From Octopus sinensis (lineage: Eukaryota), in contig NC_042998.1 in NCBI RefSeq assembly GCF_006345805.1, positions 182,342,001-182,406,000 on the forward strand: a stretch of 64,000 bases of DNA. Direction: 5' to 3'. The notes under the pieces were generated by a model. It was not told where the DNA came from. It did no database searches and was given only the letters and a program-made list of their open reading frames with translations. Position numbers and translations under genes: made by a program. Below are positions 2,625 through 63,641 of this stretch, in pieces (the stretch's first letter is position 1; each line of letters begins with the position of its first letter).

Positions 2625-2808
2625 TGATTTATCAACATAAACAAAAGCTCCAGCACTTACAAGTATGTAAAACATTCAGAAAATAGCATTACAAGGTAGT
2701 ATACGCATATTACGAAGAGTACAGTCAATAAAAGTAAAACTCAACAAGGCTTGCAGAGCTGCACTCAGTAATGCAGTGAACGTTCTCAATAAATGCCAAA
2801 TAAATAAT
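2625..2808 (+). pseudogene. Extreme 3' fragment of an R4/Dong-like RLE non-LTR element
   Basis: NIQKIALQGSIRILRRVQSI resembles YNIQKIALLGTAYILRRTLSIQ at 49.5 kb; 3' UTR CAAGGC..CAGAGCTGC.CTC.GTA is shared; followed by (AAT)n. Confidence 0.7.
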
Positions 2809-3252
2809 AATAATAATAATAATAATAATACAAATAATAATAATAATAATAATAATAATAATAATAATAATAATAATGATAATAATAATAATAATAATAA
2901 TAATAATAATAATAATAATAATAATAATAATGATAATAATAATAATAATAATAATATAATAATAATAATAATAATAAGATAATAATAAATAAAATAAAAA
3001 TAATAATAATAATAATAATAATAATAATAATAATAATAATAATAATAATAATAATAAAAATAATAATAATAATAATACAAATAAATAATAATAATAATAA
3101 TAATAATAATAATAATAATAATAATAATAATAATAATGATAATAATAATAATAATAATAATAAAATAATAATAATAATAATAATAATATAATGATAATAT
3201 AATAATAATAATAATAATAATAATAATAATAATAATAATAAAAATAATAATA
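2799..3252. repeat. ~450-bp (AAT)n microsatellite
   Basis: Near-continuous AAT repeat; source of the poly-N/I/L/Y ORFs. Confidence 0.95.
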
Positions 3253-3254
3253 AT

Positions 3255-4290
3255 CTTTTCTACTATAAGCACAAGACCATGAAATTTTGTGGGGAGGGGA
3301 TTAGTTGATTACATCGACCCCAGCGTTTCACTGGTACTTAATTTATCAACCCCGAAAGGATGATCTTGGCGGAATTTGAACTCAGAACGTAAAAACGGAC
3401 AAAATATCATTAAGCATTTAGCCCGGTGTGCTAACGATTCTGCCAGCTCGTCGCCGAAATTTTGGATGAAAGGCAAAGTCGATCTCGGCGGAATATGAAC
3501 TCAGAACGTAGCGGCGGGCGAAATGCCGCTAAACATTTCGTCCAGCGCACTAACAATTCTGCCAGCTCACCAATAATAATAATAATAATTTCTATTAAAA
3601 GGCACAAGGCCTGAAACTTTGTGGGGGGGGGGTTACAAGTCGATTACATCAACCCCAGTGCTCAACTTGTACTTAATTTATCGACCCCGAAAAGATGAAA
3701 GGCAAAGTCGACCTCAGCGGAATTTGAACTCAGAACGTAGCGACAGGCGAAATACCGCTAAGCATTTCGCCCGGCGTGCTAACGATTCTGTCAGCTCGTC
3801 GCCTTATTAACAATAATAATAATGATCCTTTCTACTGTAGGCACAAGGCCTGAAATTGGATGGGGGACTAGTTGATTACATCAGTCCCAGTGCGTAACTA
3901 GTACTTATTTCATCGATCCCAAAAGGATGAAAAGCAAAGTCGACTTCGGCAGGATTTGAACTCAGAATATAGCGGCTGCGAAATATCGTTAAGCATTTCG
4001 TCCAGCGCTCGCCTTATTATTATTAATATCATTAATAGTCATCGACCCCAGTGTTTTACTGGTGTTTAATTTTTCGACCCCGGAAGGATGAAAGACAAAG
4101 TATTTTTAGGGGAAAGGATAAGTCAATGACATCGACTCCACTGCTCAACTGGTACTTATTTTAGCAAGCTCCGAAAGGCAAAGTTGAACATGGTTGAATT
4201 TCAATTCAGAATGAAAAGAGCTGGAAGTAATACCATTATGCATTTTGTCCGACGCGCTGACGATACTGCCAGATCGTCGAATAACTATAT
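3255..4290 (-). mobile_element. Tandem cluster of at least 5 SINE copies/fragments (Meta-like core, TTA-ending tail)
   Basis: Repeated AAAGGATGAAAGGCAAAGTCGACCTCGGCGGAATTTGAACTCAGAACG, all in the same orientation and partly separated by short (AAT)n. Confidence 0.85.
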
Positions 4291-4327
4291 GATAATTGAG
4301 CGGATACCAAAGAAATTGAAATATATC

Positions 4328-4561
4328 TATTTCTTTACTGCCCACAAGGGGCTAAACACAGAGAGGACAAACAAGGACAGACAAACGGATTAAGTCGATT
4401 ACATCGACCCCAGTGCGTAACTGGTACTTATTTAATCGACCCCGAAAGGATGAAAGGCAAAGTCGACCTCGGCGGAATTTGAACTCAGAACGTAGCGACA
4501 GACGAAATACCGCTAAGCATTTCGCCCGGCGCGCTAACGTTTCTGCCAGGTCGACGCCTTC
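4328..4561 (-). mobile_element. Full-length SINE (Meta-like core, Tx1-type tail)
   Basis: tRNA-like head, core and AGCCCCTTGTGGGCAGTAAAGAAATA tail; 16-bp TSD GAAATTGAAATATATC. Confidence 0.9.
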
Positions 4562-60252: not shown

Positions 60253-60460
60253 GTTTCTTTACTACCAACAAGGGGCTAAACATAGAGGGGACAAACAAGA
60301 ACAGGCAAACGGATTAAGTCGATTGCATCGACCCGAGTGCGCAACTGGTACTTAATTTATCGACCCCGAAAGGATGAAATGCAAAGTCGACCTCGGCGGA
60401 ATTTGAACTCAGAACGTAACGGCAGACGAAATACGGCTACGTTCTGCCAGCTCGCCGCCT
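60253..60460 (-). mobile_element. Meta-like SINE with Tx1-type tail and small internal deletion
   Basis: TSD TCGACACCA(T/C)TTCTAATA. Confidence 0.85.
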
Positions 60461-61076
60461 TTCGACACCACTTCTAATAGAAAATATTTGGAGTTTATTT
60501 GTACTTTGTTGATAAAACAAGTTAACATATATAGAAATGACACAAGAAGAAGTTGTAGAGGTGGGATTCTTATAATGACAGAGAGAGAAGGAGAAAGAGA
60601 AAAAACTAGAGAGAGAGAGAGAGAGAGAGAGAGAGAGTAAAAGGGAGAATTTATCCTCATTTATGGGTGGAGAGTGACAGAAACATTACAAAAAAAATAG
60701 TACCAATATATTGACTAACAATATATTTGAATAAAACTGCACCTTCAACGTTAATAGATTAGTAGGTATCTAGTTAGACGTAGAAGCACTATTTATGATG
60801 TTTCAACTTTCTCCACGTCGAGAGTTTCCCAATTTTCTTTTTCATCTCGTTATTCTTCCGTCTTGCTTTGTAAAATACATAGTCTTACTTTGTTGAGCAA
60901 CCATTGTATCAAATTTACATTCCTTTCTATTACATTTTGTTACTTTAAATTCCTGGTCATTTTTCTCTTATCTTTCTATTTACTTTCTATGCCTTTACTT
61001 GTTTTCTTTCCTCGGTGACATACTCTTTTCTAAAAATCTGTGTACAGTCCGTTGCCATATTTCTATAGGGTGGCGC

Positions 61077-62160
61077 ATGAAAAAGTAATACGGGTTCCGC
61101 ATCATAGTGTAAATGGAGAAAGAGTTTAGCCCCCAATGACATTTATGCTGACATGCTTGCTGCATTAGGGGTTGACGCGCCAGCTTTATCAACAGGACAA
61201 ACACGTGGGCAGCTGAATTTAGGAAGAGAAGGGAGAGTATTGAAGATGATGCAAGGTGTGGACGTCCTTCAGCTACCAACATCGAGGAAAACATTGATCG
61301 TGTTCACTACATGGTGATGGTTGACACGTGATTGACAATAAATCAAATAGCCAATGGTATTAGCATATCCCGTGAGAAAGTTGAGAATATTCTGCACAAG
61401 GAATTTGGCATGACGAAGGTTTCTGTTCGGGAGCTGCCGCATCTTTTGAAACCTGATCAAACGCGCATCAGGTTGATCACATCACAGGAAAATCTATATT
61501 ATCTGGGGCAGATACAGCTGGTTTCCTTGTATGTTTCCTAACCTAGGATGAGTGTTGCGTTCATCCTTTTGAGCCAGAGACAAAGAGGCAATCCATGTAG
61601 TAGAAATATCCCTCCTCACCTGCTCCAAAGAAGGCCAAGATCGTTTCATCTGCAGGCCAAGTGATGACCTCAGTCTTTAGAGATGCAAATGCATTGTGTT
61701 TATTGACTATTTTTAAAAGGGCCACACCGTCAATGGAGAGTACTATGCAAACTTGCTGAGGAAGTTATGAAAGGTTATCAAGACCAAACGCTCAGGAAAA
61801 CTGACGAAAGTGATCTTATTTCACCAGGAAAATACTCCAGCGCATAAGTCCTTGCTTTCAATGGCTGCTGTGCGTGACTGGCTTTGAACGGGTTGATCAC
61901 CCTCCCCCATCTAACTATCAACTGTCCTTCGACATGAAAAACACTTGGCAGTATCGCAGTGATAATGACATCATATCTGCTGTTGATGTTTTTGACAAAC
62001 AGGATGGAAGCTTCTTCACCAATGGGATCCAAGCATTGTAACACCGATGGAAAAGTGTGTGAACCGCAAGGGAGACTATGTTGAAGAATAACGCTCATTT
62101 GGTCACATCTCATGAGAGTATCTTGGTCAGTCTCTGGAGTTTTCAGCCGACCATCGAATA
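61077..62160 (+). pseudogene. Mariner (DD34D-type) transposase pseudogene with right TIR
   Basis: WAAEFRKRRESIEDDARCGRP, LTINQIA...ILHKEFGMTKVS, FEPETKRQS, NGEYYANLL, LFHQENTPAHKS, GDYVEE; many stops and frameshifts; right end GAGTTTTCAGCCGACCATCGAATA. Confidence 0.9.
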
Positions 62161-63244
62161 TGATTCTATCAGGTTTAACTTGGTGGTTAAAGTGTTAATG
62201 TTAGGTAGAAATGAAGTGGATAAATCAAATACCATTTATATAATGCAGTCAGATTGACTATAGCCATTCTGTGATATTTCTAACCAGATATAAAAAGGCC
62301 AATATTTACTTTCCTTGGAAAGTGTAAAGTACCGGTAGAAATGTCCTACAGTAAGTATTTTGTTTCAGCGCTTTCGTCACGGATTTTAAATCCTCCAGAG
62401 GCCTTAAATAAGTATGTCATACACTGGCATCGATAATAACCAAAATATTTATAGACTTTTGCTTATGACCAGAATCTTTTTTCTTATTTTATCGTATTTT
62501 GTGTGAAGATATTTCCTTGCTAACAATTACTCATATTTCAATTCTCTCTTAAATTATGTCCCACTTAGTCATCAGGATATTAGGATGGGTAGTCAAATAG
62601 TCGACATTCCAATTTTCAAACTGAAAAGAAAATGTATTCATGGTTGAATTAACATAACTAGAATATCTTATCTCTATGGTGGGCTGCATTTGGCTCCTGA
62701 AAAAGAATCCCTTCTGTAGTTGAAGTACTTTGGAAAGACTTTTGATGGTGGAAGAACATATGGCAAAGTCTGCTTCGTTAGACTATGCCATTCATTCAAA
62801 ATCTTAAAGTGACATAACTATTTCACGTAAAGGCAGTTTATCCACCGAACTACTAATTCTGATTATCTTCAGCTCTTACCAATGGTTTACTTTTCGATAT
62901 GAAAATGATTAAATCTGAATTACAATTAAAACAAAGTACAACATAAAATACCACAAATATAACGGTATGTAATGAAGAAATTTATTAAATAATATGAGTA
63001 AACTGTCAATATTGAAAATTGATGTGTATGTGTATACACTATCACTCACACACACACACACAACACACACACACACACACACACACACACACACATTCAT
63101 ACATATGAAGTGCCTTGCCCAAGGACACAATACAGCGATCCGTTTGGGGTTCGAACTTACTACCTTACGATCGTATACCGAACACCTTAACCTATAAGGT
63201 ACACTTCTTCAATTTAATAACTATGTATTAACTATCTATGTATG

Positions 63245-63641
63245 TTTTTTTCTTTGAGTTTAATTCAAGTTATCCTTGCGACAGTTCAAGCCGTTTGCTA
63301 ACAAAGCAACAAAACGTTTTGCGTTGAGTTCCCGGTGTTTGTAAATATGTAGTTGAGTCGCTGTGTTGGTTGAGCTGTCGATGCATACACCCAAGTGTGT
63401 GCATCTCTTCACATAAGAATCTCAGATAGAGAATTAGGGGAATGTCTTACAAATCTTTACTGTGCCACTAATAGATTGGATTTGAAGAAATCGAGTTAGT
63501 TTCTTTTTCCCTGAAACTGAGTATTTCAAGGTTTTTGTGTAAATTTGTTGGTACATAACCTAATGCACCTATGGTAATAGGTACAAATGAGAATTCATAG
63601 TCAGGGTACAAGACTGTAAGTTCTGCTTTAATTTGCCATAA
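63245..63641 (-). pseudogene. Second, diverged 3' fragment of the RLE family seen at 21.2-21.8 kb
   Basis: YGKLKQNL/VLYPDYEFSFVPITIGALGYV...FLQIQSISGTVKICKTF; both ends abut CATA repeats. Confidence 0.72.

Follow-up and report, generated by a model that had tools for sequence, protein, structure and literature searches.

We analysed a stretch of 64,000 nucleotides from the Octopus sinensis genome (NCBI RefSeq assembly GCF_006345805.1, contig NC_042998.1, positions 182,342,001 to 182,406,000 of the forward strand), which is referred to as the window and in which position 1 is the first letter. Several families of retrotransposons that lack long terminal repeats (non-LTR) lie here directly beside microsatellites: the long interspersed nuclear elements (LINEs) TxA and TxB, which are of the apurinic/apyrimidinic endonuclease (APE) type, the LINEs RLE1, RLE1b, RLE2a and RLE2b, which are of the restriction-like endonuclease (RLE) type, and the non-autonomous elements S554 and S264. 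An earlier note made from the letters alone had placed seven insertions beside simple sequence repeats (SSRs), and all seven are present where it put them. From the junctions described below we conclude that the window very probably samples a guild of microsatellite-specific non-LTR retrotransposons together with non-autonomous riders. Within this guild, the junctions support insertion with fixed polarity of TxA in (CTAT)n, of TxB in (TTA)n and of RLE1 in (TAA)n, and RLE2a and RLE2b are likely to be associated with (ACAT)n; as part of the same favoured reading, S264 and S554 would use (TAA)n in the polarity of RLE1.

For comparison, a 2.72-Gb assembly of 13,516 contigs was searched with 3'-terminal, repeat-free queries, which yielded 30 genomic copies each for TxA, TxB and RLE1; 90 loci were cut out, and ~360 kb of sequence was read in all. 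For RLE2, the genome-wide evidence consists of pattern counts specific to the hypothesis. Binomial tails were calculated against the per-strand cover of the cognate repeats in the window itself, which is 1.2-2.7%. This null is conservative, since the other loci are far poorer in these repeats, and even so the junctions cannot be put down to chance. About 19% of the window consists of perfect simple-repeat runs of at least 12 nt, with ACAT (3.9%), AAT (3.7%), AT (3.6%), AC (2.9%) and AGAT (1.4%) as the leading repeat classes. At other loci of the same genome we found one ATCT array in 174 kb and two AAT arrays in 87 kb; with so few (ATCT)n and (AAT)n arrays in ~260 kb of other loci, the window represents a local repeat hotspot that is atypical of the genome.

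Retrotransposon copies and their microsatellite junctions

The TxA family is represented by a short and a long copy on the forward strand, which are arranged as follows.

36494-36569, + strand: (TATC)n, 5'-junction repeat of TxA copy 1 (tandem-repeat call by TRF and reading of the sequence)
36570-36717, + strand: TxA copy 1, a 148-bp 5'-truncated 3' fragment with 83% identity to 42827-43084
36718-36814, + strand: (TCTA)n, tail of TxA copy 1 and 5' flank of TxA copy 2
36815-42985, + strand: TxA copy 2, a near-full-length APE-type LINE of 6.2 kb with broken frames (Pfam)
38226-39125, + strand: remnant of open reading frame (ORF) 1 of TxA copy 2 with a CCHC knuckle (weak match)
39183-39788, + strand: APE domain of TxA copy 2 (Exo_endo_phos, PF03372, E 2.3e-10)
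40229-41483, + strand: reverse transcriptase (RT) of TxA copy 2 (RVT_1, E 1.2e-18)
42048-42602, + strand: zf-RVT of TxA copy 2 (21 bits, under the curated cut-off)
42986-43201, + strand: (TCTA)n/(CTGT)n tail of TxA copy 2

Reading the window bears out that both TxA copies are bounded by a (CTAT)n-type repeat at both ends, as had been proposed. Because (TATC)n borders the short fragment at either end, the long copy entered the older tail of the short one, i.e. the two represent a tandem insertion. Among solved structures, the APE piece comes closest to the L1 endonuclease, and the RT piece matches the R2 and L1 ORF2p structures about equally.

All of the 30 genomic TxA copies end in an (ATCT)n tail of a single phase. 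Ten of them show a genuine visible 5' truncation, and in nine of these ten (CTAT)n lies directly upstream in the same polarity, although each copy is truncated at a different point (binomial tail 3e-16). The same repeat adjoins full-length copies. A 16-mer near the full-length 5' end, which TxA copy 2 shares, matched 233 genomic sites, ~80% of which are directly preceded by (CTAT)n; (CTAT)3 was found not more than 30 nt upstream of this anchor at 103 of 131 reverse-strand sites and at 24 of 28 sites on one contig (C1). Full-length TxA comprises two 5'-end subfamilies, with a (GACA)-like and a (GGAC)-like start, both of which begin straight after (CTAT)n.

TxB, a relative of TxA (~37% identity at the amino acid and ~75% at the nucleotide level), is followed in the window by RLE1, with the non-autonomous element S554 and a composite repeat between the two.

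46830-46854, + strand: short degenerate (TTA)n, 5' junction of TxB (other copies extend upstream of 46855)
46855-48261, + strand: TxB, a 5'-truncated Tx1-like LINE with a C-terminal 386-aa ORF including zf-RVT
48262-48387, + strand: (ATT)n, shared tail of TxB (+ strand) and S554 (- strand)
48388-48941, - strand: S554, a 554-bp non-autonomous element, preceded and followed by (AAT)n as read on the element strand
48942-49175, + strand: (ATT)n, a 43-bp core (49053-49095) and (AAT)n, which form the middle of a foldback-like composite repeat
49176-49693, + strand: RLE1, a 5'-truncated Dong-like LINE (RLE domain and 3' untranslated region, UTR) inside (AAT)n
49694-49713, + strand: (AAT)n tail of RLE1

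The zf-RVT of TxB scores above the curated cut-off (E 4.1e-9), and no ORF1 is seen in the truncated window copy. TxA and TxB share the architecture of the L1/Tx1 group, and the Tx1 label is consistent with their predicted domains and their target behaviour. An (ATT)n tail is present in 30/30 genomic TxB copies, and about six of the 12 copies with an informative 5' junction begin within (ATT)n (binomial tail 3e-9). The 3' UTR ends of TxA and TxB are homologous but their tails differ, which points to a switch of target between sister lineages.

In its translation, RLE1, which was read over its 3' 1.9 kb, has a CCHC finger and a PD..D..K nuclease after an RT thumb; these motifs were read from the translated sequence, Pfam having no model for the nuclease itself. 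In all 30 genomic copies, (AAT)n succeeds a terminal ...CTACTG. The 5' junction lies at (AAT)n in 18 of 25 truncated copies and at (ATT)n in none of them (binomial tail 4e-24). About half of these 5' arrays begin where a different (AAT)n-tailed element has its 3' terminus, and the remaining ones start at sequence without another copy in the loci read. A paralogue of the repeat unit at 49096-49860 lies elsewhere in the window (28803-29025); at the position of RLE1 its (AAT)n runs on without a break, and this unit can stand in for an empty RLE1 site. A long target-site duplication that we considered in one further locus (L030) turned out to be a compound repeat that recurs several times.

A word search at the protein level returned 990 relatives of RLE1; hundreds of relatives with 50-56% identity come from cnidarians, fish, shrimp and starfish. 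Homologues in Penaeus indicus and Oculina patagonica (53-55% identical) are flanked by (TAA/AAT)n, and in the coral locus a 3.9-kb homologue lies between (AAT)20 and (AAT)8. The (TAA)n target of RLE1 is held across phyla and matches that of Dong, with which the R4/Dong label is consistent.

A second Dong-like family and copies of a putative short interspersed nuclear element (SINE) subfamily, S264, likewise adjoin (AAT)n.

2625-2802, + strand: RLE1b, the 3' end of a second Dong-like family, without a repeat on its 5' side
2803-3254, + strand: (AAT)152, tail or target array of RLE1b, after which SINE copies follow in tandem
3255-4010, + strand: S264, three tandem copies of a ~264-bp SINE subfamily, each after an (AAT)n run
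58095-58640, - strand: S264, two further tandem copies with (AAT)n between them on the element strand

RLE1b and RLE1 are 61% identical over 31 aa. The two riders, S264 and S554, have defined heads and thousands of copies, and they carry an (AAT)n tail in the polarity of RLE1; their 3' ends are unlike the RLE1 3' UTR. S554 is present in 18 of 60 AAT-type loci. These loci were chosen via elements in (AAT)n, and the rider counts in them are therefore inflated; the unbiased figures are genome-wide pattern counts. According to these, S264 heads follow (AAT)4 in 19 of 61 cases on contig C1 (~4,100 sites genome-wide), and a perfect (AAT)4 precedes ~12% of 9,667 genomic S554 heads. At C1:28378736-28378865, the 16-nt head of S554 is moreover repeated in tandem every 19 bp, so that part of the 9,667 sites are not element copies. 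Several more element 3' ends recur beside (AAT)n or (ATT)n. TxB and S554 lie tail-to-tail on one duplex array (48262-48387), and APE-type TxB and RLE-type RLE1, the latter with both riders, use the AAT·ATT duplex in opposite orientations.

Copies of the general form of the SINE are located at 2096-2292, 4320-4560, 6024-6256, 17970-18199, 18832-19090, 29317-29565, 59579-59819 and 60249-60441. They have a different head and lack (AAT)n flanks, i.e. only one subfamily is tied to the microsatellite. The foldback-like composite repeat is found at 28543-29021 and 48942-49856 and consists of two ~150-bp arms in inverted orientation, each of which ends in (ATT)n on its own strand; the arms meet tail-to-tail at the conserved 43-bp core, a third copy of which stands alone at 32999-33034.

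RLE2 and the (ACAT)n repeats

The RLE2 elements are located on the reverse strand.

21205-21756, - strand: RLE2a, a 5'-truncated RLE-type LINE (ORF end, internal (ACAT)n and ~115-bp terminal unit)
21313-21449, - strand: internal (ACAT)n/(CATA)n of the RLE2a 3' UTR
21205-21312, - strand: ~115-bp terminal unit of RLE2a
21757-21782, - strand: short (24-nt) (CATA)n-like run, 5' junction of RLE2a (same junction at four other genomic sites)
63222-63645, - strand: RLE2b, an older relative of RLE2a
63646-63738, - strand: (CATA)n on the element strand, 5' junction of RLE2b

The (CATA)n at 21313-21449 had been taken for the 3' junction of RLE2a, which has to be corrected: the repeat is internal to the 3' UTR. 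The ~115-bp segment follows the internal repeat in all four copies compared, which come from several sources (the window and loci L095, L096 and L097). Genome-wide, a 17-mer of the terminal segment occurs 3,026 times and one of the RLE2a 3' UTR 2,521 times, and on contig C1 the two words share a strand at a spacing of 150-540 bp roughly as frequently as the survival of exact words permits. From these observations we conclude that RLE2a extends to about 21205. That the 115-bp segment might be an independent SINE was also considered; the counts and the co-occurrence fit the element's own terminus better, without fully separating the two. A 16-mer at the true terminus matched 1,645 sites, of which 26-39% have (ACAT)3 not more than 15 nt downstream, at a constant phase. 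RLE2a does carry an (ACAT)n tail, of which the window copy has almost lost its own.

Whether (ACAT)n is also the target is less evident than for the other families. The link might stem from nothing but the internal 3'-UTR microsatellite and a templated tail, in which case RLE2 would not be target-specific or would have another target. In line with this, the repeat formerly taken for a junction is internal, with the terminal unit beyond it in every copy and the two parts co-occurring across the genome, the window copy is almost tailless, and its 5' junction is common to only five genomic sites. The 5' side argues otherwise. Both window copies carry a sense-polarity (CATA)n at their 5' junction although RLE2a and RLE2b are only 38-41% identical at the amino acid level (binomial p ~7e-4). 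When a fixed internal RLE2 anchor was combined with (ACAT)4 upstream, a single genomic site was recovered, which represents a copy that is truncated elsewhere and also adjoins the repeat. In a protein library, six mutually divergent homologue fragments with different truncation points are read in from HTYI, the peptide encoded by ACAT, and in L096 a solo terminal unit lies in tandem within an ACAT/ACAC-like repeat. Taken together, it is likely that RLE2 targets (ACAT)n, and an origin from the internal repeat and the tail alone appears unlikely.

Further relatives were found outside the window. A copy with 91% identity to RLE2a (L095) in GCA_951406725.2, which we take to be Octopus vulgaris, shares the truncation point of the window copy and has (ACAT)n at its 5' end. 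For RLE2b there are ~2,100 candidate copies at ~80% identity, and the homology stops inside a degenerate CATA-like run. The RLE2-like full-length relative P0242 comprises 1,085 aa and its contig ends in (ACAT)n; it shares 31% identity with RLE1 across thumb, finger and nuclease (470-aa alignment), and its best solved relatives are R2 proteins, in keeping with the R2 group to which we assign RLE1 and RLE2. In L097 (215-265), a related RLE2-like copy from another source, an opposite-polarity (TATG)n is located inside the nuclease coding sequence where the window copy reads ...EKENTYAELL..., and it looks like a microsatellite born in place. A dispersed repeat at 21067-21196, which sits immediately downstream of RLE2a, is paired with 18193-18329 (86% identity); a second such pair is formed by 53294-53713 and 56838-57259 (87%).

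Two further repeats were noticed in the window. At 50595-51682, a GC-rich minisatellite with ~40 copies of 22 bp (77% match), after which come 3.2 copies of a 61-bp unit, is unrelated to the LINE families, and at 53395-53434 there are seven imperfect copies of interstitial TTAGGG-like telomere-type hexamers.

Targets, tails and the repeat landscape

Three features stand out: each family ends in its own repeat at a constant phase, copies truncated at different points and full-length copies alike have that repeat, in unchanged polarity, directly at the 5' junction, and insertions stack in tandem in the tails of older copies. These features could be accounted for if the element endonuclease nicked one strand of the cognate repeat and the repeat at the RNA 3' end paired with the nicked strand and primed reverse transcription, which would fix orientation and phase. 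Second-strand cleavage in the same array would then leave the repeat on both sides, and riders with the same tail may borrow the LINE machinery. The earlier note had suggested targeting with fixed polarity beyond the 3' tails and had named the 5' junctions of truncated copies as the place to look for it. Indeed, the repeat is enriched there in TxA, RLE1 and TxB, and we regard the case as strong for these three families and as moderate for RLE2.

Several observations weigh against the guild of microsatellite-specific elements. We have not seen an orthologous empty site; reads recruited to 46730-48300 assembled to contigs from all copies and left the unique flank without depth. The cognate repeat is found at only about half of the TxB 5' junctions, the share of S554 heads after (AAT)4 is low, albeit under a strict criterion, and the rider counts in the AAT-type loci suffer from the choice of these loci. 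Concerning RLE2, the 5' pattern hits were selected to contain the repeat, ORFs running through stop-free repeats are preferentially called, which affects the HTYI fragments, and the window RLE2a is the nearly tailless copy whose conspicuous (CATA)n is internal. Finally, the endonuclease specificity and the pairing between tail and target are steps that we infer.

As an alternative to target choice, the elements might insert anywhere and survive preferentially in repeat-rich DNA under low constraint, as has been suggested for Waldo-A/B, found close to CA repeats in Drosophila melanogaster. The high repeat content of the window and the fact that TxB and S554 show the repeat at a minority to half of their 5' junctions would fit such a passive accumulation. 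However, it would have to produce junctions that are precise to the base, a polarity so strict that no RLE1 copy has (ATT)n at its 5' end, and one motif per family despite several equally abundant motifs, and the junction repeat is also kept at repeat-poor loci elsewhere in the genome; we therefore consider it very improbable. Even less credible is the view that the microsatellites are merely templated 3' tails, with unselected sites and with upstream repeats due to chance or to a neighbour's tail: the constant-phase 3' junctions of every family are as expected for an RNA-copied tail and some 5' repeats are indeed older tails (36718-36814, those in L004, L014 and L057, and, for RLE1, about one in two 5' arrays), but (CTAT)n precedes full-length and truncated TxA alike, mostly without an upstream copy within 1.5 kb, the other half of the arrays at the 18 RLE1 junctions begin at sequence without another copy in the loci read, and inserting into the tails of older elements is itself a choice of target.

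The guild of microsatellite-specific elements leaves the partition of repeats less complete than initially proposed. Of the four families with an SSR of their own, the family-specific junctions stand; because (TTA)n read from the opposite strand is (TAA)n, three rather than four duplex classes are used. Likewise, the families were thought to divide up the dominant SSR classes, which holds for ACAT, AAT and AGAT and not for AT and AC, i.e. for three of five classes. No recurrent element end was found at (AT)n or (AC)n in the ~360 kb read, although these repeats are equally abundant in the window. The proposal that the elements feed the SSR load found no support. According to a rough hand sum of the TRF arrays adjoining elements, only about one tenth of the repeat content of the window touches an element, and most of it, comprising (AT)n, (AC)n and most of the (ACAT)n, has no element next to it. 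The repeat richness of the genome is not explained by these elements.

A more far-reaching claim would be that the most active LINEs and thousands of SINE copies are confined to three microsatellite classes with strict polarity in a self-reinforcing loop, which we consider conceivable but doubtful. If it were true, the tail of each insertion would be a new target and would steer where repeats and retrotransposons accumulate, and APE-type and RLE-type enzymes on opposite strands of AAT·ATT, together with the switch between TxA and TxB, would provide a natural paired system for repeat recognition. The pairs TxA/TxB and RLE1/RLE2 combine related enzymes with different targets and could conveniently be used to work out what decides on a target. 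Octopus repeat annotation papers also discuss the activity of LINEs in the brain. If the Dong-R4 and L1-Tx1 elements of octopuses enter microsatellites, new insertions would mostly fall in simple repeats and not in genes, so that their mutational impact would have to be rejudged, and short reads would systematically miss or misplace such insertions.

Comparison with known systems

Microsatellite-specific insertion is already known in insects, fish and a snail, and the principle is two decades old. It has been described for Waldo and Mino in the R1 clade, for Kibi and Koshi in the Tx1 clade and for Dong in the R4 clade (PMC3812793, PMC4494074, PMC4640811). Anopheles gambiae harbors Waldo in (ACAY)n, Mino in (AC)n and Dong in (TAA)n, and fugu harbors Kibi in (TC)n and Koshi in (TTC)n (PMC3812793). 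With three families on three motifs in the one genome and two in the other, the sharing of several repeats by several families, which had been put forward as distinctive, is not new; the octopus resembles Anopheles gambiae with Waldo, Mino and DongAg in having several microsatellite-specific LINEs in one genome.

The closest parallel to RLE1 is Dong, which is specific for (TAA)n in Bombyx mori, Anopheles gambiae (DongAg) and the snail Biomphalaria glabrata (DongBg) (PMC3812793). Like Dong, RLE1 has an RT, a CCHC finger and a C-terminal PD..D..K nuclease, and its tail and its insertion site are both (TAA)n, in sense polarity, a target that its homologues in coral and shrimp have kept. It differs in that it occurs here with thousands of copies and with SINE-like riders on the same target. 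According to the parts of the octopus repeat annotations consulted, Dong-R4 and L1-Tx1 LINEs are abundant and recently active (PMC13282606), and among molluscs R4-Dong is reported almost only from cephalopods in the corresponding sections of another study (PMC10294476). In the portions consulted of the octopus repeat papers (PMC13282606, PMC8967140, PMC10294476), there is no mention of microsatellite targeting.

TxA and TxB resemble Kibi, Koshi and the crocodilian Tx1 families in being APE-type elements with an RT, a C-terminal zf-RVT and one microsatellite in a fixed polarity. The crocodilian families target (TTCC)n/(TTTC)n and were regarded as specific if more than 20% of the flanks consisted of the repeat (PMC4494074), a threshold that both TxA and TxB exceed. 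In contrast to Kibi and Koshi, the targets are (CTAT)n and (TTA)n and not (TC)n or (TTC)n, which indicates different families with the same behaviour, and the related TxA and TxB differ in target yet keep a homologous 3' UTR end.

The (ACAT)n motif of RLE2a and RLE2b falls within the ACAY of Waldo. Waldo and Mino are both APE-type LINEs and occur in mosquitoes and an earwig. Only the target motif is alike, since RLE2 has an RLE-type C-terminus instead of an APE domain, from which we conclude that a similar target was reached independently. RLE-type elements with a reported microsatellite specificity include Togen, in (TG)n, and some HERO families (PMC4640811), which combine this type of enzyme with a microsatellite target as RLE1 and RLE2 do, with different motifs. 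Against this background, what looks new is the use of (CTAT)n and (TTA)n by Tx1-like elements, which are unlisted for Tx1-type elements in the literature compared, the (ACAT)n of an RLE-type element, the switch of target between sister lineages, the riders and the scale.

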